Shown: in pieces, positions 10-21,436 of the stretch
Position numbering within the stretch: the first letter of the stretch is position 1
How the letters are laid out: each line of letters begins with the position of its first letter
NCBI GenBank assembly: GCA_047495785.1
Contig: JBLDXI010000029.1
Location: 3,859,986-3,923,985, forward strand
Length of the DNA stretch: 64,000 bases
Direction of reading: 5' to 3'
DNA from: Lepidodermella squamata
Lineage: Eukaryota > Animalia > Gastrotricha
The notes under the pieces: model-generated
What the model saw: the letters and a program-made list of their open reading frames with translations, nothing else
Databases searched by the model: none
Told to the model about the DNA's origin: nothing
Made by a program: the position numbers and the translations under genes

Positions 10-3000
10 GACCCACCGTGCAAGTCGAAAGCTTGCGTTTGTGAGGACTGTACTAAGCGAAAAGGTTTCCCTCACTCATTTGACAGGTGTCGTCCGGGTA
101 CGTTTTTCCCACGCCCCACAGCATCGGAAAAATAACCATTTCTTTTATCTCAGTCACTTACATCAATTCCTTAGACGACTCCTGCATCCCCGATAGTCCT
201 GATGCTGTTCTAACCGTTACAGTACCCAACGCGGACTGTAATGAACAGAACAAACCCGAGTGCATCTTCGACAGGCAAGGAAATGGCTGCGACGCTGGGA
301 CACGATGCGGCAATGGAACTGATGGTTTTTGCGATGGTTACAACCGCGAGTGCATGCAAGATTGGTGCGTTTGCGTGGAGGAGAACGAGGTTTTCGACTA
401 CAACTACGGCGGTTGCGGTGCACGTCTCATCGGCGATCAGTGTAGAAAGTAGGGGGGGGGGGGGGGACGGTGGGTATCATCCTGGTCTCGGCGATGCTTC
501 ATCCCGACCTGGCAAGGGACGACAGCTCATCCCCGGGGGGATGAGGTTATATCCTGGTCTCCAGCCTAAACTGCACTGGGGACGATACTGGTAGCGGGGT
601 GAAGTTAGCGCAATCTGACGCCAAAATTTGAAATTTACGCGCAAAAGCCCTTTCAACTGTAAATCGCGAGATTGTAAAAATATAATTAAGAATATCTAAA
701 TTATATATGACATCCAGCACAATAATGGAATTATAAAAGAAGCGAGGTATAGACTTTTTACGCAAGGTGAGGTGAGGCAGACCTTAAAGCGGCAGACCTG
801 AGCCGTTCTCGTCCACTTTCATAGATATGCAAGAGTGTAGAGCAAATCTGGCGATAGATGGCGTAAATCTAAAGTCATATTCTGATTCCCAGACCCTCTT
901 TTAGTAAAGATGTTATATTTTCTTTCAGATCTAGATGATTTGCCACCTATGAGTCAATTTTTTCGATTTTTCACTTTGGACCATCTGAAAAATGTCATTC
1001 TGAAGGGTCTAGAGCAAATCTGGCGATAGATGGCGTAAATCTAAAGTCATATTCTGATTCCCAGACCCTCTTTTAGTAAAGATGTTATATTTTCTTTCAG
1101 ATCTAGATGATTTGCCACCTTTGAGTCAATTTTTTCGATTTTTCACTTTGGACCATCTGAAAAATGTCATTCTGAAGGGTCTAGAGCAAATCTGGCGATA
1201 GATGGCGTAAATCTAAAGTCATATTCTGATTCCCAGACCCTCTTTTAGTAAAGATGTTATATTTTCTTTCAGATCTAGATGATTTGCCACCTTTGAGTCA
1301 ATTTTTTCGAATTTTTTCGAAGAAGAATGACAAGGTTGACCGCCTCAAGAAGATCGTGAACTCATTGACGGACTTCACCTTTCTCGCTCAGCTGGCGTTC
1401 ATTCATGATGCCTTACGAGAGATGACCTGGTTATCCTTGACCCTTCAGAGGTCCGAATCGTCGCCCCTGGACGTTTGGCCTCATATAAGGCGAACTATTG
1501 AGCACCTCGACAACATGGGCGTGTCTGACGGTGTGAGCGTGTCAAATCTCATGAGCTCCTACGCCGAAAAACAGCTGAACGGCATTCCTCTTCGAAACTG
1601 CACTGATGCCGCCCTTGCAGCGTTTTCAGCAACAAAGTTGAAGCTATCCAGCAAGATGGCTGAAAGCCTGCGCGAACGTGTCTCGACATCGCAGAAATTT
1701 CTGGAAGCAGCTTCAGCCCTCGTCCCGCTTAACTGGCCGCCACGATCAAGTGTCAAGTTCCTCAAGTTCGGCGAGTTCGAAGTCGAAACTCTGGCAAATT
1801 CTTTTGGCCTTGATTGGTGGGCGGTGACGAAGGATCTACGCGATTGGAAAGAAGGTCGCGAACCCCTGCAATCGTCAGCGCTTGGTCAGCTCATGATAAA
1901 GTTGAAGACAGTCGCCGTCACTTCGTCTGACTGTGAGCGTGGATTTTCTGAAATGAACCGCACTCAATCAGACGATCGCAATAGGCTTTACGTTGTTACC
2001 ATGTCCTGTAAGTTTCAATTTGATGATTCGTAAATACTGGAATTAAAATCTTCGATTTATAGCTCTGATGTTCGTGTGTATTAATGGGCCTGCGATTCAC
2101 AACTTCGACCCAACTCAATTCGTGCGCTCATGGCTACAGAAGGGTCGTCGCAGTGCCCGTGATCAAGCCCGTCTTCCGGCTATAATCGACTCGCCGGTGG
2201 AGAAAATCAGGTCCACCATTTTTATACGAAAATAATTGATAGAATTAGGATGAATTCAATCTCAAAATTAGCTTTGTCTCGTCCAATGGTAGGACGCTGC
2301 CCCTAAAAGGCGGAAATCTTGGTTCGATTCCAAGGACAAAGAATGCTTTGAGAAATATAGGAAGAATGTGAATAGATGATGCGAGCGAACGCGTAGCGTT
2401 CGCGAGCGAAATTTTTTGACCAAAATACTCTATCCCCCCCTCAGGAAAATTCCTACTTTCTACGCTGTCGGCGATTCATGCTCAAAGGATTCGGAATGCG
2501 CTGTTATGCCCCAATATGGCAAGAAGAACTACTTGGTCTGCCGCAGTGGCAAATGCGCCTGCGATATCGAGGTTTCTGTTGAAACTGAGTACCGTGAATA
2601 CAATGAAGAGCGGAACAGCTTCGATGTCAAACGTGCTTGTTTGCATAAGAATGCCACGATTAACCTAAAACAGGGCGAGGAGTGTGACCTTCCCGAGAAC
2701 AGCCGGGAATGGAGATGGATGGGCGGCAAATGGCAATGGAACTGGCAAGAAGGCACGGTTCGCGTTTGCGAGAAATCACTTATTTGCCTCGCTTGCATCG
2801 AAGATGGCGACGTAGGCTTGTGCCGTGAGTTTTGAGGTTGCTTTTCTAAGTCTATTTAACCCTGGGTGGTTTATTTACTTTTTTATGTTTTTGCTGCGTT
2901 GGTTATATCGTTAGCGACGTTGAATAACTCGGATTTAGGCTTGTTTACAGCATTTTCGAAGCGACGGTTGACAAATAAAATGCGGTGTTTTTAGCGTGAA

Positions 3001-4554
3001 TGAAGAGGCAAAACAAAAGACTGTTTCCTTGTCACCTCGCACTTTGAAACGATGTAAACAAGTCTAAATCCGACTTACTCAAGGTCGCTAACGATATGGT
3101 TGTTAAATCATAAATAAATACCGGGTGAAAACAATCAAAAACCACTCTGTGAAAACTGCAGTAAACACCATGAACAGCTCTGAGTTAACAGTACCATTAA
3201 CAGGCAAGTTCAATGGACCCATTGGAATGACGGCTGAACAATGCGGGCGTAAAACATTCGTCTATTCCGGTCCGAAGTCCTCGGAGAGTGCTCCATTCAA
3301 GAGCTTTTCCAGGCAACGCCTGATCACAAGTGAGAACACAGTGATGCAATGTATAATTTCGTTAATAAAATTGTCTATTAATTAATAGATTGCACAGATG
3401 CCTCGGTGAAATGCCCACAAAATCAAAGATGCGAATCCTTCTCCACTTTTGTAAGGAAGTTCGCTTCGCGAATTACCTGCTTCTCTATTCACAACCCTAA
3501 ATAATCTAGGACCCACCGTGCACGTCGAAAGCTTGTGTTTGTAACGACTGCGCTCTGCGACCATTGGAATATGGCGATGAATGTGTTCCAAGTTTGTTTT
3601 TCTCTTTATAAAACCGTAGAATTTTTCATTTCTTCACCATGCAGCTACTTACATCAACTCCTTAAACTCTACCTGCACATCCACCCCTGGCGAGGTTGTA
3701 ACCATACCCGGCGCGGCCTGTCATTCACCATCGAACAAAACCCAGTGCCTTAATGGCACACAGGGCAATGGTTGTAATACTGTGGCAAGATGCTCATCTG
3801 ACGAAGATTGTTCTGGCAACGAACGCATTTGCAAGCAGGGATGGTGCGTTTGCAAGTTTAAGTACCAGGTTTTCGACTACAACACCGGCAGGTGCGTCGA
3901 ACGACAAATCGGCGATCCGTGTTCAAAAGACACCGACTGCACTATTGAGTACAATCTCAGCACTTTCTTGGTCTGCCGCAGTGGCAAATGCGTCTGTGAG
4001 AAGTATTCTGTTGAAACCGAGTTCCTTGAATACAATCAGGAGTGGAATAGCTTAGAGGTCAAGCGGGCTTGTATTAGTGAGGAGTCCACGTTTAACTTGG
4101 AACAGGGCGAGAAGTGCGACGTTCTGTTAAACGGCCGGAAGTGGAACTTGAAGTGGAGACCGGAGTGGGGTCTTAGCCAGTACTTGGAGCCCTATGAGGA
4201 CAGCAAGATTCGCCTTTGCAAAAAATCACTGATTTGCTTCGCTTGCATAGAAGATGGCGACGGGGGACTGTGCCGTGAGTTTTGACGTGGCTTTTCAATG
4301 TGAATTTGACTGTACCATTAATAATAGGCAAGTTCAATGGAACCATTGGAAAGTCGGCTGAACAATGCGGGCGAAAAAAATTCGTCTATTCTGGCCCGAA
4401 TCCCTTAGAAAGCGCTCCGACCAAGTCAATTTCTAGGCAACGCCACCTGACAAGTAAGCACAAAGATACCATTGCCGGAAAGAACGGCGTGACTTCGGCT
4501 GTGTCCTCCGCCACAATCCTGGCTGCTGTCTTGCTCGTCGTTTCAGCTTTGTAG
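10..4554 (+). CDS. Cys-rich EB-module-like surface protein, gene A. At least two tandem units; 5' end lies upstream of the window; interrupted by a hAT element.
   Basis: Exons inferred: 10-97, 154-437 + 2476-2824 (split by the hAT), 3204-3329, 3389-3450, 3510-3591, 3644-4274, 4328-4554. The family motifs DPPCxSKACVC, GNGC, IGDxCSxDxDC, LVCRSGKCxC and QCGRKxFVYS each occur twice. Ends in a hydrophobic tail (SATILAAVLLVVSAL). Confidence 0.8.
838..1310. repeat. 172-bp tandem repeat (~2.7 copies) inside the hAT element
   Basis: GATGTTATATTTTC recurs at 909, 1081 and 1253; the copies are near-identical. Confidence 0.95.
1311..2235 (+). pseudogene. hAT transposase C-terminal part (dimerization domain), N-terminus missing
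   Basis: ORF 1254-2033 contains VTSSDCERGFSEMN (hAT dimerization motif). After an intron (gtaagt at 2008 to tttatag at 2061) the frame continues LMFVCINGP...FDPTQFVRSWLQKGRR, typical of ZNF862/KIAA1586-like hAT transposases. Confidence 0.8.
2272..2342 (+). tRNA. tRNA-like cloverleaf (anticodon TAA, C33, short variable loop) inside the hAT element; function unproven
   Basis: Acceptor CTTTGTC/GACAAAG, D stem GTCC/GGAC, anticodon stem CTGCC/GGCGG with loop CCTAAAA, T stem CTTGG/CCAAG with loop TTCGATT. Confidence 0.65.
2905..3097. mobile_element. MITE in an intron of gene A (same family as 61847-62022)
   Basis: ~45-bp imperfect TIRs, ATATCGTTAGCGACGTTGAATAACTCGGATTTAGGCTTGTTTACA and its reverse complement ending at 3097. 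Confidence 0.8.
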
Positions 4555-6283
4555 TAGCTGAATTAATTGATCCGGCGTATTTATCTGAGGCTGACTGATA
4601 GCGACAATGCTTTCGAAATGCTGAGCTTTGAACAAATCTTATTGACATATCTCATTCACGTATTGCCGGTACTAAATGTTGAAACAGTTGTAAAATTTAA
4701 TTTTCAAGGTTGAAAGTTTCATATATTAATGAATGCTTCTGCTTATGTTGCGGCCGAGGTATGCAATCGCTCTCAACGGAGCTCTCTGAATAATTATTTA
4801 GATATAAATAAAGTCAAGTCTAACAAGGTGTTCAGAGTGTAATGAAGGTTGGCTGACGAATATCGTCATTTTATTTGTGTGAGCGATCATGTTTGCAAAT
4901 TTATACCAGGATTCTTAATTATCGAAATGCACAGATACGGCGAAAACAAACGATGTTCAGGTCATGGCGTGGAACGATGATACTGACGTTTTCGAGACGT
5001 AGTCGATTTGTTTGAATAAGGCGTATAATTTTGCATTTTGGGAACGATATCTGCTCACATCCGACAATCCGGCGCAAATTATCTCATGGTTTCTCGACTT
5101 ACGGTCCTGATTGTCGCATCAGGGTTTACAGTGATTTCCGGCTTGCCGTTATAGAAGTTGGTAATCGAAACCGGTGGATTTGATTATGTGGTCAAGAGGC
5201 CCGCGGCACTACGGTTACTCGCATGAGCAAATTCTTCAGCTCTAAATTTTGCCACAAACGGACTTTCTGAAAAATTGAGCCTTATCAATGATCCATTTAT
5301 TCATTCATTCAGTAATTCATTGCATTTTAATTAACGACAATGGAGATATTATAGCGTGATTCACATGGCTCCCTAATGATTTTAAAATCGGCTAAACATT
5401 CCGGAAAATTAAATTGTGACACATTTTTGAGTCGGAGCAGCTGCACATATATGTGCAACTGTTAGGCCATTGACATCATAATCGAATTCCATCGGGTTAA
5501 CTAGCTTCCAGCCACGATAGGTAATGATTTTTGTTAAGAAGAAATGCAGGCTGTGAGCTATGAGTGAGATGAGTCACAATCCAAAAAGAGAGGTACTAAA
5601 TTGGGGTTAGCTTTCTTTACTTGGAAAAGGACAAAACCAGGGTAAAACAACTACTCTAAAATAGAAAAGTAGGGCGTAATGCGTTTTCTCCCTCTCCACT
5701 GAAGAGTACCTAGGTGCAAAAGGTTATTTTACGCCATTCGCTTCTATTTTAGAGCGCAACACGCAATGCATATTTACCATTGCGCATACGCATGTTGTAT
5801 TATGACAGCTATGATTTTAGCACTTTTCTTTGTCTGTGTCCCAAGTACTTACAATACCGTGAGAGTAAAAATCCTACATTTGACAAGTCCTAAGAATAAA
5901 TGATAATTTCGAGGGATTACGGAATCGCAAACAATTATTAAGAAAGCGATTAATTTGTTGGGAGTAGCAAGATTCAATTTCGGTCACTCGTGTGTCGCTG
6001 CCATACTGAGTGGTAAAGGATATCAGTTATTTACTCAGAAAATAAGATTTTTTCGTTTAAGGAATTTTTTTTCGAGGTTAAGAATTTTTGAAATAGAGAC
6101 AAAAAAGGTATTTGGCCCACCTCAAATATTCGAAAAATGTCGGTAGAAAATTCCCCACCTCTGATGGCACCAGCGCTCGCCGGTCAAACTCTGACATAAT
6201 GTTTAATAAAAAATGTTGAAAGCCGCTCAGTCCAAGGTCGTGCGGAGTGAAAAAACGCCATCTTTGGCTAAAAGCGTTGTTAT

Positions 6284-6620: not shown

Positions 6621-7861
6621 ATGCTAACAAGAATCATTTTGGTGAGACTTTTCAACAAAATTTGTGAATATTTTTCTTATTTCCTTCCTGAAAATCAGAC
6701 GTTGTGTCTTGTATCGAGCGCATTGGGGCAAAAACTTTCTACAAGTAAGCCTCGCGATGCTTTATAGAGTTGCGTTGACATCATTCTTTAATTGATAGAT
6801 TGCACAGATGCCTCGGTGAAATGCCCAGATAATCAAAGATGCGAAGCCTTCTCCACTTTTGTAAGGAATTTCGTTTTGCAGGCAGTTTGCTTTTTTATTC
6901 AAAAACTCAATTCTAGGACCCACCATGCAAGTCGAAGGCTTGCGTTTGTAACGACTGCGCTGTTCGAGGAGAATATGGCGATGATTGTGTCCCGAGTATG
7001 TTTTTCTTTCGCTAGATAGATTCGCAGAATTTCTCATTCCTTTCATCTCAGTTACCTACGTCAACGCCCTGGGCGCAGCCTGCAATACGCCTGGTGCTGT
7101 TATAACCATACCCGCCGCAGATTGTGATAAGCCAGCGAACAAAGCCCGATGCCTGCTTAGTACCCAGGGCAATGGCTGTGATGCCGGGACGAAATGCTCA
7201 TCCAACGATCAGTGTGCTGGCTACGACCGCACTTGCGAGCAGGGTTGGTGCGTTTGCAGGGAGAAGTTTCAGGTTTTCGACTACAACACCGGCAGGTGCG
7301 TCGAACGTCAAATCGGCGATTCGTGCTCGAACGACACCGACTGCGCTATCACACGCGATAAGAAGAACTACTTGGTCTGCCGTAGTGGCAAATGCGCCTG
7401 TGATACGGCCGCTGGTGTTGAAACCGAGTACCGTGAATATAATCAGCTGTGGAATACCTTCGATGTTAAGCGTGCTTGTTTGAACAAAAAGGCCACGGTT
7501 AACGTGAAACAGGGAGAACGATGTGACCCAGTTGTCAACAACATCAACTATGAAACGGCTAAGGTTTGCGAAAAATCGCTGGTCTGCTTCGCCTGCATGG
7601 AAGATAGCGGACTGTGCCGTGAGTTTCTAAGTATACTCTTTGAAATCTGAAGTTAACTCGATTTTTCCAGGCAAGTTCAACGGACCTATTGGAAAGTCGG
7701 CTGATCAATGCGGGCGACAAAAGTTTGTGTATTCGGGTCAAAAGCCGTTGGATGATGCTCCGATCAAGACTGCCTCGGGCAAGAGCGGTGCGACTGTCAT
7801 CGCATCCTCGGTCTCGGCGCCAATCCTTGCTGCTTTCTTGCTCATTGTTTCGGCTTATTAA
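6621..7861 (+). CDS. Cys-rich EB-module-like secreted/GPI-anchored protein, gene B (6 exons)
   Basis: Exons 6621-6641, 6699-6744, 6799-6860, 6917-6995, 7052-7618, 7671-7861. Signal peptide MLTRIIL/TLCLVSSALG; C-terminal tail ASGKSGATVIASSVSAPILAAFLLIVSAY. Confidence 0.9.
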
Positions 7862-10800
7862 AAACTTTATTGGTTTCCAAAGCATCAGATGTCAGAAAAA
7901 TATGACGATGCTTTCAGAATTGCAATTCCCCAGCTTTACACATTACCGACTGAAATAACTCATCTGATAAATAAAAAAGTTTTTTTTGAGTTCAACGTTA
8001 ACTGGATTAGAAGGGCGTGAAGGCCTCAACCGTTCTGCAACACCTGAGGTGCGATTTCAAACAACACGCTCAACCTTTCATTATTCTTGACTGTGATCAG
8101 GTTTTTGGGCATGCCCGCACTATACGAGCGTGATATCTGCTCATTCAGGAATACCCGGTCCGTTTTTGCTAATAGGGACAACCCGTTATAGATGTAGGTG
8201 AATCAAGGCCGGCAGATTCAATTATATGTGGTCAAGGGTCAAGGGACCCAACAGTTGCGCGTATGGGTGGATGTGAGCTACTCCAAAATTGCCAACATTC
8301 GATGGTAGTGACACCAAAAATGCGTCTCATGGTTTAATCCAACAAAAGAGCGCAGCCTACCGAAATGAGTCGGGTTAAAAGCGTTTGTTAATATTATCTA
8401 TCCATTTCACTTACGTCATATAATTAACAAAAAACATCAGTGAAGTAAAAAGACGAGAAATTAAACAAACAATTCAAGTCGAAGGGCGAAAATGAAGTGG
8501 CGAAAAATGGTAAGTTCAAGCTATGTGATTCATAGGAGCTTCTTTGTTAGCTCTTTGAGACGAATGGCTGACGAGATTTTTTACTTCGCCGCCAAAACAC
8601 GCCACAGTTTTTCCCATTTTTTAATGCGAGGACCGGGGCATTTAGTCAGGGGTCAAATCGTAGCGAATACTAGAATAGTAGAGAAGAATTCCGCAATTTT
8701 TGACAATTTCGGTTGCAAATATCCGACATAGCCGGTCGAATTTGTTGCCATTTAATCAGCGGATGTACCTGAAATTAAATGAGAATATATATCAATTACT
8801 AGCTACAAAATCAGAGATCGGGTTAATTCGATTCTTAGCTTGTAAGCTTTTCTTAATAATCCGAGAAATTTCCAAAAAATTATAATAAATTTTAGAATTA
8901 TGAATTTAAATATTTGAGGAATTTTTCCCATGAAAACGAGCGATATCAGCACATTTCGAAATTTTGAAACGATAAGACCTGGTTTTTTTCGTAAGATGTA
9001 AACTTCTGCTTTCTTCAGTTACCTAAAAGCGTGATTTTTTCCCGCGACCTCGAACGGCTAGTAGCCCATGTTTCCGTGCAGCTTCGGTACAGCGCACCGA
9101 CATGCACTAGGCGCTGTTTACGAGTTGCGTCATGCAAAGTGACAATCTCCAGTAAACATTGCTTTCCGCAGTATGACGTCTGGGACCAATAAGCTACGGC
9201 TAGTACTGAACGCTAGTACCGCTCCGGCTACCTAGGTTACAATAGTAATTATCTGAAATAATCAATATTTAAAATCAAGTAGCATATATATGGCGAGAAA
9301 GCAACACATCTACTTCTTCTTCAAGCCCCATAGGGCACATCCAATGCCAGCAAAAGTTTGTTATTTTTGCGAGTTTTCTGAGCTGCGAACTGGTGTGATG
9401 GTGGGCCAGATGAACTGCCATCGGCCCATTCATCTGGCTGTCGTTTAAGGCAGAGAGCGAAGCCCTACCATTACATCGTTACATCGGCCCATACGGTGAG
9501 GTCGGTCAAGGACCACAGGGGATTTCGCCGTCCTACTTCGCTCTTTGTTTTAATCCTTTCATGGCCGATTTTGTAACCCGCTTCTCTCTATCCATCACCG
9601 TAAAGGCTGTTCAAAAAGTGATCGAAATCGCCCTATTGGCCCAGCTGATTTCAGCACATTTTTCAAACACCCTAGTTTCAGCATCAGATGCTCTCATAAT
9701 TGAATTTTCATGTTCTAAGCCTCTCCTTCAACACTCCTTGACAATCTCCCTTTTTTATTTCGAGGAACAAATTAGTTGAAACCAGTTTTCAAAGTCAGCA
9801 TTTTTATCAGTTTTCAGCCAAGTCAGCTTTTTCACACACTATGGCGGACACGATATCATTTTTAGTTTTATCAATAAAAGATGAGAAACCACCGTAATTT
9901 CGAAATTTCAATCTCAGGTAGACTATTTTAAAACAGCTACAATGTGCTGACCATGCCAAATAACGGCGCGTTCGTTTGAAATTCTTATAGTTAACATCGA
10001 AAAGTCGTATTCCTTAAACGGGTGATGAACAATTCATCAAATTAAAATTACTGCAGATTTTCAAAGTCTAAATTCCAAAATCGCCCTTATGTATACGGCC
10101 ATGAAAGGTTGAAGACGATCACAACTTCCACGACCATTAAAATTTGCAAGAATGAGCGTTCTCTTCAAGAATTGCTATTCCGAGTAGGGAAACAAATAAT
10201 TGAAATCAAATGTGGAGGCTTAGTTTGAATTTTACGTTGCAAAAAAAATTATGAATGAATTTTAGAAGAATAATTAGGTCAGCTCAAGGCGCAGGATAGC
10301 AATTATCAAGATTTTCAAACCGAATTACTTCTCGGGAGTCGTAAAAATGAATTTCGGTCGCTGTCTTTAGGTGTTAAAGGAAATTACTCGTTTGTTTAGG
10401 AAAGATATTTTTCGTCTACAGAAGTTTTTCCAAGGTTAAGATTTTGTACAGTTTGTAAAGAAAAATTCGAAAAATTGTTTTTAAAAAATATGGTATCGGC
10501 GTTCTATGAAATAATGTTGTTTGCAAACTGTTGATAAGCCGTTACTTAATGGCAAAAAAAAACTGTGATATACATCTCATTTGTCATTTTTTACTGCTCC
10601 GTGAATCTGTAATAATATATATGTTCGCTCACACACCGTAGAATGCGTGTTTTTTACTTAAGAAGGCATAAAAAATAACAGAAAATGCGCCGGCCGGGCG
10701 GTGGAATGATGTGGAAAGATATTCGGGCGTGATGATGATACAGGTGTGAGGCGTACATACAACAACTTATATGACTGGCGAGCATGCACCGAGGCAGTTG

Positions 10801-13860: not shown

Positions 13861-13898
13861 ATGAATGAATGAATGAATGAATGAATGAATGAATGAAT
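13861..13898. repeat. (ATGA)n microsatellite
   Basis: About 9.5 perfect copies. Confidence 0.95.
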
Positions 13899-13969
13899 GG
13901 CGAGAAAGGACTTTGCCGTGAGCTATTAAGGTGGACAATTTTTTGAATAAATTAATATTGACCTCGACA

Positions 13970-14142
13970 GAGAAGTCCAATGGACCTTCGGCTGATCAAT
14001 GCGGACGCCAGAAGTTTGCCTATTCGGGTCCGAAGCCGTTGGAAAGTACCCCGATATAGACCATTGACAGTAAGAACGGCGCGCCTTCAGGCATCTCCTC
14101 AGACTCAGTCCTAGCAGCGGTCTTGCTCATTGTTTCACCTTA
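13970..14142 (+). pseudogene. Relic last exon of a Cys-rich family gene (D)
   Basis: SADQCGRQKFAYSGPKPLESTPI* followed by a tail like other copies (VLAAVLLIVSP). In-frame TAG; upstream exons are absent and a LINE relic lies in their place. Confidence 0.8.
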
Positions 14143-14755
14143 ACATTACTTGAACGTAATGATATTAGTGATATCATCTGATTTCGTAAATTATGTCGTC
14201 GTCACAAAATGGAAGATGGCTAAGAAACAAGTACTAAGGATTGAGAGAGGCAGACTTAACACATTTCCTCAAGAGTAGCAAGAAGATTCTCGTAAATAAG
14301 TATAACAGCAAGACAAACCAGTCAGCCTTCTGTGTTGAATTGAATATGTATACCTGATAGCGAAACGCTGCCCGGCTTAAGGTCGCTCTATTGAAGATTA
14401 TACGACGTCAATTTTACAGCTCGGTGATTACGCAAAGTAAAAAATGTGTTCTATCTCTCGTGCTCTAGTCTCTAAAGTTCTGAACCGCAAAAAATGCGGC
14501 CGTCCGCGCGTTTGTTGTGATAGAAAGAAATTCGGGCTTGATGGTGATGCCAGTGTGAGACGAACATTAAACTATACCCGGTGAGCGTGCACTGAGGCAA
14601 TTCTACTGTATAAGCGCAAGAAGCAAGAATTTCATAGTAATGATAATGTACCTTACCGTCGTTCAACGCTGTAATCTATTCTCTAACACTTTTTAAACGC
14701 CAGATAGATATTTTTTCTATACTACAATTTTCTCTTTTATTTAACTTTAAGCAAC

Positions 14756-15991
14756 ATGTTAGCGAGCGTAATTCTGGTAGGATTTTGAAAAATATCAATT
14801 TCTCTGAAATTTCCCCCGGAAAATTAGCCGTTGTTTATTGCATCGAGCGCGCTGGGGCAACGCCTGTCCACAAGTAAATCAAATGTTACACTGCTAAGCT
14901 TAGTTTTAATCTGTTTTCGATCTCTAGATTGCACGGATGCCTCAGTGAAATGCCCACAAAATCAAAGATGCGAATCATTCTCGACTTTTGTCTGTTCAGC
15001 CATACAGACAATCTATTATTCTATTTAAAATCCCAACTCTAGGACCCACCATGCAAGACTAAGGCTTGCGTTTGTAACGATTGCGCTGTTCGAGGAGAAT
15101 ATGGCGATGATTGTGTTCCGAGTATTATTTTTCTACATAAAATCGCAAACTTCATTTCATTTCTTTCTTCTCAGCTTCCTATGTCAACTCGATAAACGCA
15201 ACCTGCACATCTACCCCTGGCGTTGTTGTAACCATACCCAGCGCGGCCTGTGATACGGAATCGAACAAAACCCGGTGCCTCATGGGCACATTTGGCAATG
15301 GCTGCCATCCTGGGGCATTATGCTCAAATAGTAGTTCGTGTCTTGGCTACAACCATCAATGCGAGAAGAGTTGGTGTAGATGCAAGGAGACGAATGAGTA
15401 CTTCGACTACAACATCGGCAGATGCGGCGAACGACAACTCGACGAAATATGCATGAGTGACAGTGACTGCGCTGTTACGTCCACTCCGAAGAACTACATG
15501 GTCTGCCGCAATAACAAATGCACCTGTGATACGGCCGTTTCTGTTGAAACCGAGTACCGTGTGTACAGTGCGGAATGGAATAGCTACGATGTCAAGCGTT
15601 CCTGTGTGAGCAAGAAGGCCACCGTTAACCTGAAACAGGGTGAACGATGCGACCCAGTCTTGAACGCTGCCAACTATGAAACGGCTAAGGTTTGCGAGAA
15701 ATCACTGGTCTGCTTTGCGTGCATGGAGGACAGCGGACTGTGCCGTGAGTTATTAAGGTGTATTTTTTCAATCTGATTTTTACCAATATTTTTCTAGGCA
15801 AGTTCAACGGACCCATTGGAAAGTCGGCTGATCAATGCGGTCGTCAAAAATTCGAGTTTTCAACGCCAAAGGCGTTTGGCGATGCCCCAATCAAGACTGC
15901 TGCCTCGGCTAAGAGCGGTGCGACTGTCGTTGTATCCTCGGTCTCGGCGCCTATCACAGCTGCTATCTTGCTTATTGTTTCGGCTTATTAA
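14756..15991 (+). CDS. Cys-rich EB-module-like protein, gene E (6 exons)
   Basis: Starts MLASVIL|gtagga, same exon structure; the exon 3 donor is a weak gtctgt; ends APITAAILLIVSAY*. Confidence 0.85.
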
Positions 15992-20190: not shown

Positions 20191-21436
20191 ATGTTAACGA
20201 GCCTAATTGTGGTGAGATATTTTCAAAATTCGCTTAAATTATATATCTTAAGTTCCATTTAAAATCAGACGGTGTGTCTAGCATCGAGCGCATTCGGGCA
20301 ACGCCTGCTCACAAGTATAAACCCCAGGTGCAGAGTTTCGTTTTCAGCCTTTTAAATTAATAGATTGCACGGATGCCTCGGTGAAATGCCCTCAAAATGA
20401 ACGCTGCGAATCCTTCTCGACTTTCGTAAGAAATTTCGCTAGCCATACAACTATTTAGTTTTATTAAAAAATATTCAGGACCCACCCTGCAAGTCAAAAG
20501 CTTGTGTTTGTAACGACTGCGCCATTCGAGCTCTTTTCAAGGACAACTGTGTTCCGAGTAGGCTTTCCCTGCCAAATCAGAGAAACAGGCATTTTCTTTG
20601 TTATCCCAGCCACCTACGTCAACACTCTAAACGCGACATGCGTCGCCGATAGCCCTGGCGTTGTCGTAACCGTACCCCGCGCGTCCTGTTTTTCAGAATC
20701 GAACAAAACACAGTGCATCCTTGATAATCAGGGAAATGGTTGCGAAGCTGGGACACAATGTGGCAAGGGAACCCTGGGCTTTTGCGCTGGTTACAACCGC
20801 AAATGCGTACAGGATTGGTGCGTTTGCGTGGAGGAGAACGAAGTTTTCGACTACAACGCCGGCGGTTGTGTCGCTCGTCAAATCGGCGATTCGTGCTCGA
20901 AAGACTCGGAATGCGCTATTACGACCGATAAGAAGAACTATTTGGTCTGCCGCAGTGGCAAATGCGCCTGCGATACGGCGGCTGGTGTTGAAACCGAGTA
21001 CCGTGAATACAATGAAGATTGGAACAGCTTCGATGTGAAACGTGTTTGTATGAGCAAGAAGGCGACTGTAAATCTGAAACAGGGTGAGAAGTGTGACCCT
21101 ACCGTGAACAACTGGAACTTCGAGGCTGCGAGGGTTTGCGAAAAATCTCTGATTTGCTTCGCTTGCATGGAAGATGGCGAGAAAGGACTGTGCCGTGAGT
21201 TTTCAAGGCGGATTTTTTAATCTGAATTTTACCACGAGACTTTTCCAGGCAAGTTCAATGGACCTATTGGTAAGTCGGCTGATCAATGCGGTCGTCAGAA
21301 GTTTGTCTATTCGGGTCCGAAGCCGTTGGAAAGTGCCCCAGTCAAGACCATTGCTGGCAAGAGCGGTGCGACTTCGGCTGTCTCTTCAGCATTAATCCTA
21401 GCTGCTGCCTCGCTCATTGCTTCAGTTTCCTATTAG
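20191..21436 (+). CDS. Cys-rich EB-module-like protein, gene G (6 exons)
   Basis: MLTSLIV|gtgag, conserved intron positions; last exon 21249-21436 ends ALILAAASLIASVSY*. Confidence 0.9.

Follow-up and report, generated by a model that had tools for sequence, protein, structure and literature searches.

Exon 3204–3329 of gene A, a member of a tandem gene family in Lepidodermella squamata, is identified by its sequence as a fusion exon, with a part derived from the last exon of the family on its left and an exon-2 end followed by intron 2 on its right. It is likely that a deletion or an illegitimate crossover made this exon, that two modules came to be chained on one anchor in this way, and that the fused gene was later copied. 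The original prediction had proposed that neighbouring genes were fused by a deletion or unequal crossover, and this proposal is borne out by the chimeric composition of the exon, by the collinear intron and exon 3 behind it, and by tree support.

Tandem gene family and exon organization of gene A

The window, i.e. the whole stretch of 64,000 nucleotides that was analysed, corresponds to positions 3859986–3923985 at the end of a 3.92-Mb contig (designated C29) in an assembly of 121 Mb and 151 contigs. The left third of the window is occupied by a tandem family, all copies of which lie on one strand, and introns here are mostly 50–60 nt long. The family members and the exons used as comparators are listed below.

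Left edge of the window, + strand: gene A, which runs off the edge, with exons 1–3 upstream of the window
6621–7862: gene B, single-unit family copy
About 11.0–12.1 kb: gene C, single-unit family copy
About 13897–14150: broken fragment between genes C and E, consisting only of a copy of the exon-5 end and the last exon, with an in-frame stop
14756–15991: gene E, single-unit family copy
14828–14873, + strand: exon 2 of gene E, a comparator with a hydrophobic signal core followed by the shared end
About 18 kb: gene F, divergent family copy
20191–21436: gene G, single-unit family copy
20269–20314, + strand: exon 2 of gene G, a comparator for the 3′ part of the linker

The fragment at 13897–14150 is probably a dead family member. 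In the single-unit genes, exon 2 encodes the hydrophobic core of a predicted signal peptide, followed by small residues (A-x-G) and a shared end (Q-R/K-L-x-T), and it ends in phase 1 in genes B, E and G. The last exon of these genes encodes a K-T motif, then small residues and then a hydrophobic tail of 13–15 residues with a mean hydropathy of 2.0–2.7. Gene A departs from this plan in having two modules, the exons of which are as follows.

10–97, + strand: exon 4 of module 1, homologous to exon 4 of gene G, followed by GT at 98–99
154–437, + strand: pre-transposon part of exon 5 of module 1, with an open frame and the family cysteine pattern, joined to 2476–2824 in the second contig (C46, see below)
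438–2467, + strand: hAT-type DNA transposon in exon 5 of module 1, with an 8-bp duplication, TCGGCGAT
2476–2824, + strand: post-transposon part of exon 5 of module 1, ending in phase 1
2825–3203, + strand: intron before the linker exon, containing a MITE-like inverted repeat at 2905–3097
3204–3329, + strand: chimeric linker exon, about 3204–3301 derived from a last exon and about 3302–3329 from an exon-2 end
3330–3388, + strand: linker intron (GT..AG, 59 nt), collinear with intron 2 of the single-unit genes
3389–3450, + strand: exon-3 copy of module 2, with 85–90% identity over 61/62 nt to exon 3 of genes B, E and G
3510–3591, + strand: exon-4 copy of module 2, with the donor GTTTGT
3645–4274, + strand: exon-5 copy of module 2, the main cysteine-rich body, with one borderline EB module
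4328–4555, + strand: last exon of gene A, with a hydrophobic GPI-type tail and a 42-nt scar at 4429–4470

The MITE-like element at 2905–3097 has 51-nt inverted arms that are 88% complementary, and the paralogues of gene A described below carry different inserts in the same pre-linker intron. The intron after exon 4 of module 2 starts with GTTTGT (3592–3597), a GTT-type donor.

Composition and anatomy of the linker exon

The first 98 nt of the linker exon could be aligned with the last exons of genes B, E and G, with 76–80 identical bases among the 97–98 aligned (~80%), and gave no alignment with the exon 1–2 regions of the same genes, which served as a control. This agrees with the earlier claim that the linker is homologous to the last exon of the family without its GPI-type tail. 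The last 28 nt of the linker were identical to the exon-2 end at 22/28 positions in gene G and 19/28 in gene E, the observed score being reached in 0/2000 shuffles, and showed no match to the corresponding part of the single-unit last exons, again used as a control. The 15-base pattern GGCAACGCC-N5-ACAAGT occurred with zero mismatches at exactly four sites, namely the linker (3312), the last exon of gene A (4436), and the exon-2 ends of gene E (14856) and gene G (20297); 0/100 shuffles were as rich in matches. The predicted match of the linker end to the exon-2 ends of E and G is thus seen both in the identity counts and in an exact pattern shared by the two genes.

The likeness to the 5′ part of the single-unit genes extends beyond the exon. 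The last 19–28 nt of the linker and at least the 3′ part of the linker intron match the exon-2 end and intron 2 of genes B, C, E and G. BLAST homology runs from exon 3 back into the linker intron for 32 nt in gene C and for 9–11 nt in genes G and B, and further 5′ in the intron there are short blocks that align with intron 2. When the linker intron was compared with intron 2 alone, the score was reached by 13–151/2000 shuffles for B, C and G and by none for E, so that the homology of the two introns, taken alone, is weak. The order of exon-2 end, short intron and exon 3 is collinear with that in the single-unit genes.

The linker exon is preceded by the acceptor AG at 3202–3203, is 126 nt long and has phase 1 on either side. 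Its reading frame is that of the last exon of the family, and the encoded peptide starts with K-F-N-G and proceeds through the last cysteine to Q-R-L-I-T; the stalk and the last cysteine lie in the last-exon-derived part (about 3204–3301). The donor GT at 3330–3331 leaves one base over, and after the acceptor AG at 3387–3388 the split codon is completed by exon 3389–3450. Phase 1 at 2824/3204 and at 3329/3389 gives the linker class 1-1 symmetry. Read-through of the linker donor, or retention of the intron, leads to an in-frame stop at 3383–3385, which was confirmed to be TAA. On rereading of the sequence, the coordinates, phases and motifs of the linker exon in the original prediction proved to be base-exact. 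Its further claim that the linker is spliced into the exon-3 copy at 3389 agrees with the acceptor and the phase, and the splice itself is deduced from conservation.

Copies of the two-module gene and direction of the change

For comparison, the 20 kb of C29 upstream of the window and the matching part of a 99%-identical contig (C46) were analysed. Inspection of the upstream sequence for further chained units, as the original prediction had proposed, revealed two more two-module genes, so that C29 carries three in tandem (A″, A′ and A), each consisting of exons 1–5, the linker, exons 3–5 and the last exon. C46 carries two two-module genes. The AG, the GT and the frame were kept in 5/5 linker copies. 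Since the linker is present in three diverged paralogues on C29 and in two copies on C46, the fusion is old and is not an assembly artefact. Copies with more than two modules were not found at the DNA level in the assembly; the multi-unit gene that had been predicted is accordingly a gene of chained units, with exactly two units in every copy found. C46 may be either the other haplotype or a segmental duplicate. In its upstream two-module gene, both modules are closest to those of A″ and the linker and linker intron are closest to those of A′ (97–98%), and these mixed affinities suggest an unequal crossover or conversion between paralogues.

In the exon-5 tree, which was rooted with a gene upstream of the cluster and the divergent copy F, the module-1 copies formed one clade (98/98) and the module-2 copies another (99/100), and module 1 was sister to the single-unit gene G (85/99). 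Because there is one clade per module and module 1 stands beside G, the tree speaks for a single fusion between two distinct neighbours, with the fused gene being copied afterwards. The upstream outgroup gene (exon 5 at 1242–1814 of segment L001) is single-unit and has a hydrophobic tail of its own, which indicates that the single-unit form is the older one.

Two other explanations of the linker were weighed against a fusion of single-unit genes. The 19-nt end shared with exon 2 is short, and could in principle reflect convergence on a needed N-terminal peptide (Q-R-L-x-T), chance, or a chimera of assembly or amplification, the last of these because the DNA for the Lepidodermella squamata assembly was obtained by multiple displacement amplification, which yields chimeric reads (PMC11660948). 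However, the 15-base pattern has four exact matches and none of the 100 shuffles was as rich, the intron and exon 3 behind the shared end are collinear with those of the single-unit genes, and the structure recurs in five diverged copies on two contigs, so that convergence, chance or a chimera is extremely unlikely. The change could also have run in the opposite direction, with an ancestral two-module gene from which the single-unit genes arose by splitting and the linker as the source from which exon 2 and the last exon were each derived; distant EB-type proteins do include multi-module ones, with 2–7 matched stretches per protein. Such a split would require an exon to be interrupted in its middle by a tail, a 3′ UTR, a promoter, exon 1, intron 1 and a hydrophobic signal core, and with the outgroup gene being single-unit with its own tail and module 1 nesting by the single-unit gene G, we regard this direction as very unlikely, though less so than convergence or a chimera. 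A simple internal duplication of a unit was also considered as the origin of the two modules and was rejected, as it would not carry an exon-2 end; moreover, modules 1 and 2 are only about 54% identical, and most of their exon 5 groups with different single-unit genes.

Proposed origin of the fusion exon

In the preferred reading, the final exon of a single-unit gene would have been linked, by a deletion or an illegitimate unequal crossover, with the terminal ~25 nt of exon 2 in the gene that follows it. The break in the upstream gene would lie just before the GPI-type signal, and that in the next gene at the predicted end of the signal peptide, with the join falling inside a short patch where the parental last exon and exon 2 happen to be alike, sharing about 13/19 bases (around CATT..GGCAA). 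As this patch of microhomology is inside two exons, it argues for a deletion or illegitimate crossover rather than for classical recombination within introns. Module 1 would thereby have lost its hydrophobic GPI-type tail, and module 2 its promoter, start codon and hydrophobic signal core. With phase-1 introns flanking each of the parent exons, the fusion exon has 1-1 symmetry and preserves the frame. On the module-1 side the join is likely to fall a few residues short of the GPI attachment region, and on the module-2 side it is likely to coincide with the signal-peptidase site. Both predicted cleavage sites were placed by reading the sequence, and a join at such a position connects one mature part with another.

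The primary transcript of the fused gene would start at the promoter of module 1, and the linker donor at 3330 would be spliced to the former exon-3 acceptor at 3388. The predicted product begins with a single signal peptide, continues through module 1, a Ser/Pro-rich stalk and module 2, and ends in a single GPI-type tail. The fused gene would then have been duplicated as a whole, giving the three paralogues on C29.

Coding constraint on the linker and module 2

Linker and module 2 of A, A′ and A″ (375 codons) showed dN/dS of 0.40–0.48; exon columns were joined for the codon counts, and single exons were used in the homology searches. Differences among the three genes were most frequent at third codon positions, followed by first and then second positions (p 0.003–0.04). 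Among their exons, one 3-nt indel block was found in 1128 nt, and the introns of the paralogues had eight blocks in 224 nt (1, 1, 1, 3, 3, 3, 4 and 308 nt). A stop codon was gained in 99.7% of neutral simulations at the A–A′ divergence, and no stop was observed in A, A′ or A″. The frame across the junction is open in these three genes and in the upstream two-module gene of C46; the C46 copy of gene A has one stop. In the frame of module 2 there is a TAA three codons before exon 3, and the module has neither an in-frame ATG nor a signal peptide of its own. As a conserved module of secreted type without its own start is readable only through the linker, we strongly infer that module 2 is translated as part of the chain, and the 3329/3389 splice is very likely to be real for the family.

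Alternatively, the fusion may be real and module 2 a dead passenger, with transcripts that stop in the linker intron or retain it and that encode a tail-less secreted protein of one module. Gene A is damaged on both contigs (see below) and the two-module model is without supporting relatives in protein collections, which speaks for this alternative. Against it stand the coding constraint on module 2 in three paralogues and the lack of stops where nearly all neutral simulations gain one. In addition, the linker intron differs in length by 4 nt, and the peptides that read-through would add vary in length and frame among the paralogues. A dead module 2 is therefore quite unlikely, and translation of the two-module chain is the reading adopted here. 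For annotation, A, A′ and A″ are to be treated as two-module genes and not split at the linker.

A second linker junction in the last exon

All two-module genes have a 42-nt insert in their last exon (4429–4470 in gene A), which is not present in the single-unit genes. The insert comprises the chimeric junction of the linker, an intact phase-1 donor GT (4454–4455) and about 17 nt resembling the start of the linker intron, and it leads in frame into the normal tail. Over their first 98 nt, the two-module last exons group with the linkers (95/97), apart from the single-unit last exons. From the linker junction and this grouping, the two-module last exon is a linker copy that was rejoined to the tail. 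The scar may stem either from a collapsed third module or from a linker conversion that ended at microhomology. The number of two-module genes differs between the contigs, being three on C29 and two on C46. That module number is still in flux and that the linker junction serves as a re-usable joint is a doubtful proposition, to which we give a small chance; if it were true and the retained in-phase donors were sometimes used, there would be a choice among anchored forms with one, two or more modules.

A Trp-rich loop was observed at the same place of exon 5 in both modules (about 2700–2765 and 4128–4205), and it is absent from all four single-unit genes. In the rest of exon 5, outside this loop, module 1 groups with gene G. 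The shared loop hints at an exchange between the modules. Sliding-window and partition trees were too weak to decide whether one unequal crossover between modules accounts for the scar and for the resemblance at the start of intron 5 as well as for the loop.

Predicted nature of the products

The products of the family are probably cysteine-rich, GPI-anchored surface proteins. Visual inspection and hydropathy were the basis for assigning the signal peptide and the GPI signal; hydropathy was 2.0–2.7 for the tails, preceded by small residues, and 1.4–2.4 for the N-terminal pieces. In Pfam, module 2 of gene A generated a borderline hit on the EB module (PF01683) with 24.5 bits, against a gathering cutoff of 24.3, and gene B scored 21.9, below the cutoff. 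An Atlas feature search likewise indicated EB proteins, at 0.90. Genome-wide, about 68 exon-level matches to the module were obtained, with close copies only in this cluster and on C46. Among 1.84 billion representative proteins, none had more than 38% identity, and the 10 distant hits belonged to unnamed clusters. AlphaFold prediction with 14 paralogous exon-5 sequences gave a weak model with a pLDDT of 66.5, and a Foldseek search against the PDB returned nothing below E 0.19. If the proteins are anchored as predicted, carrying two modules on each anchor would make its module valency twice as high.

Comparison with known multi-domain families

The arrangement resembles that of the Ly6/uPAR (LU) cluster, in which single-domain GPI proteins encoded by phase-1-flanked exon sets stand beside two- and three-domain members that keep the exon pattern of the unit, such as uPAR, C4.4A and CD177 (PMC6600238). 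As in that cluster, small cysteine-rich single-domain genes of predicted GPI type are clustered here, the predicted signal peptide has a separate exon, the last exon encodes the predicted GPI signal, the domain exons are flanked by phase-1 introns, and a few members have at least two domains with the exon pattern kept. There is no relation to the LU proteins in sequence or fold, the sole Pfam hit here being a borderline EB module and the fold search having been empty. A further difference is that the junction is still legible here, as the linker retains a piece of the signal-peptide exon.

In Patthy's class 1-1 modules, a phase-1 intron at the signal-peptide boundary makes secreted single-domain proteins joinable (PMC8001218). 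The unit described here is likewise bordered by phase-1 introns, one of them by the predicted signal-peptide cleavage site. However, classical exon shuffling takes place within introns, whereas here the break is inside two exons at microhomology and produced a hybrid exon; also, the copies that were joined all belong to one family. Like other deletion fusions of tandem paralogues, this one lost the 3′ end of the upstream gene and the promoter and 5′ end of the downstream gene and has one reading frame. Unlike deletion fusions in general, it removed two predicted sorting signals, the C-terminal GPI-type signal and the N-terminal signal peptide, almost exactly.

The case is a real but ordinary gene fusion, which is a known route to multi-domain proteins, and its mechanism is not new; current ideas on domain accretion are unchanged by it. 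Its value is that a secreted single-domain family is seen turning multi-domain in legible form, with break points, microhomology, lost sorting signals and later gene copying all readable at one locus. It also illustrates that, besides recombination in introns, an exon-to-exon deletion can yield an in-frame module joint if both exons border phase-1 introns.

Damage to gene A

The hAT-type element (2030 nt, 438–2467) splits exon 5 of module 1 and is flanked by the duplication TCGGCGAT at 430–437 and 2468–2475. The hAT assignment rests on this 8-bp duplication, on CAG-type inverted ends and on a C-terminal motif in an ORF. The C46 copy of gene A lacks the 2038-nt block with the element. As the element is present on C29 and absent from the 99%-identical C46, its insertion is recent or polymorphic. 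The C46 copy instead has a CGA>TGA change in exon 5 of module 2, at the position of 3902 (L004, within 4182–4805). With the hAT insertion on C29 and the nonsense codon on C46, both copies of gene A are compromised, in different ways, and may no longer make the full protein; A′ and A″ are intact. The hAT-type element itself has a G-run near its 5′ end, ~180-nt tandem repeats (about 840–1310) and an ORF with the hAT C-terminal motif.
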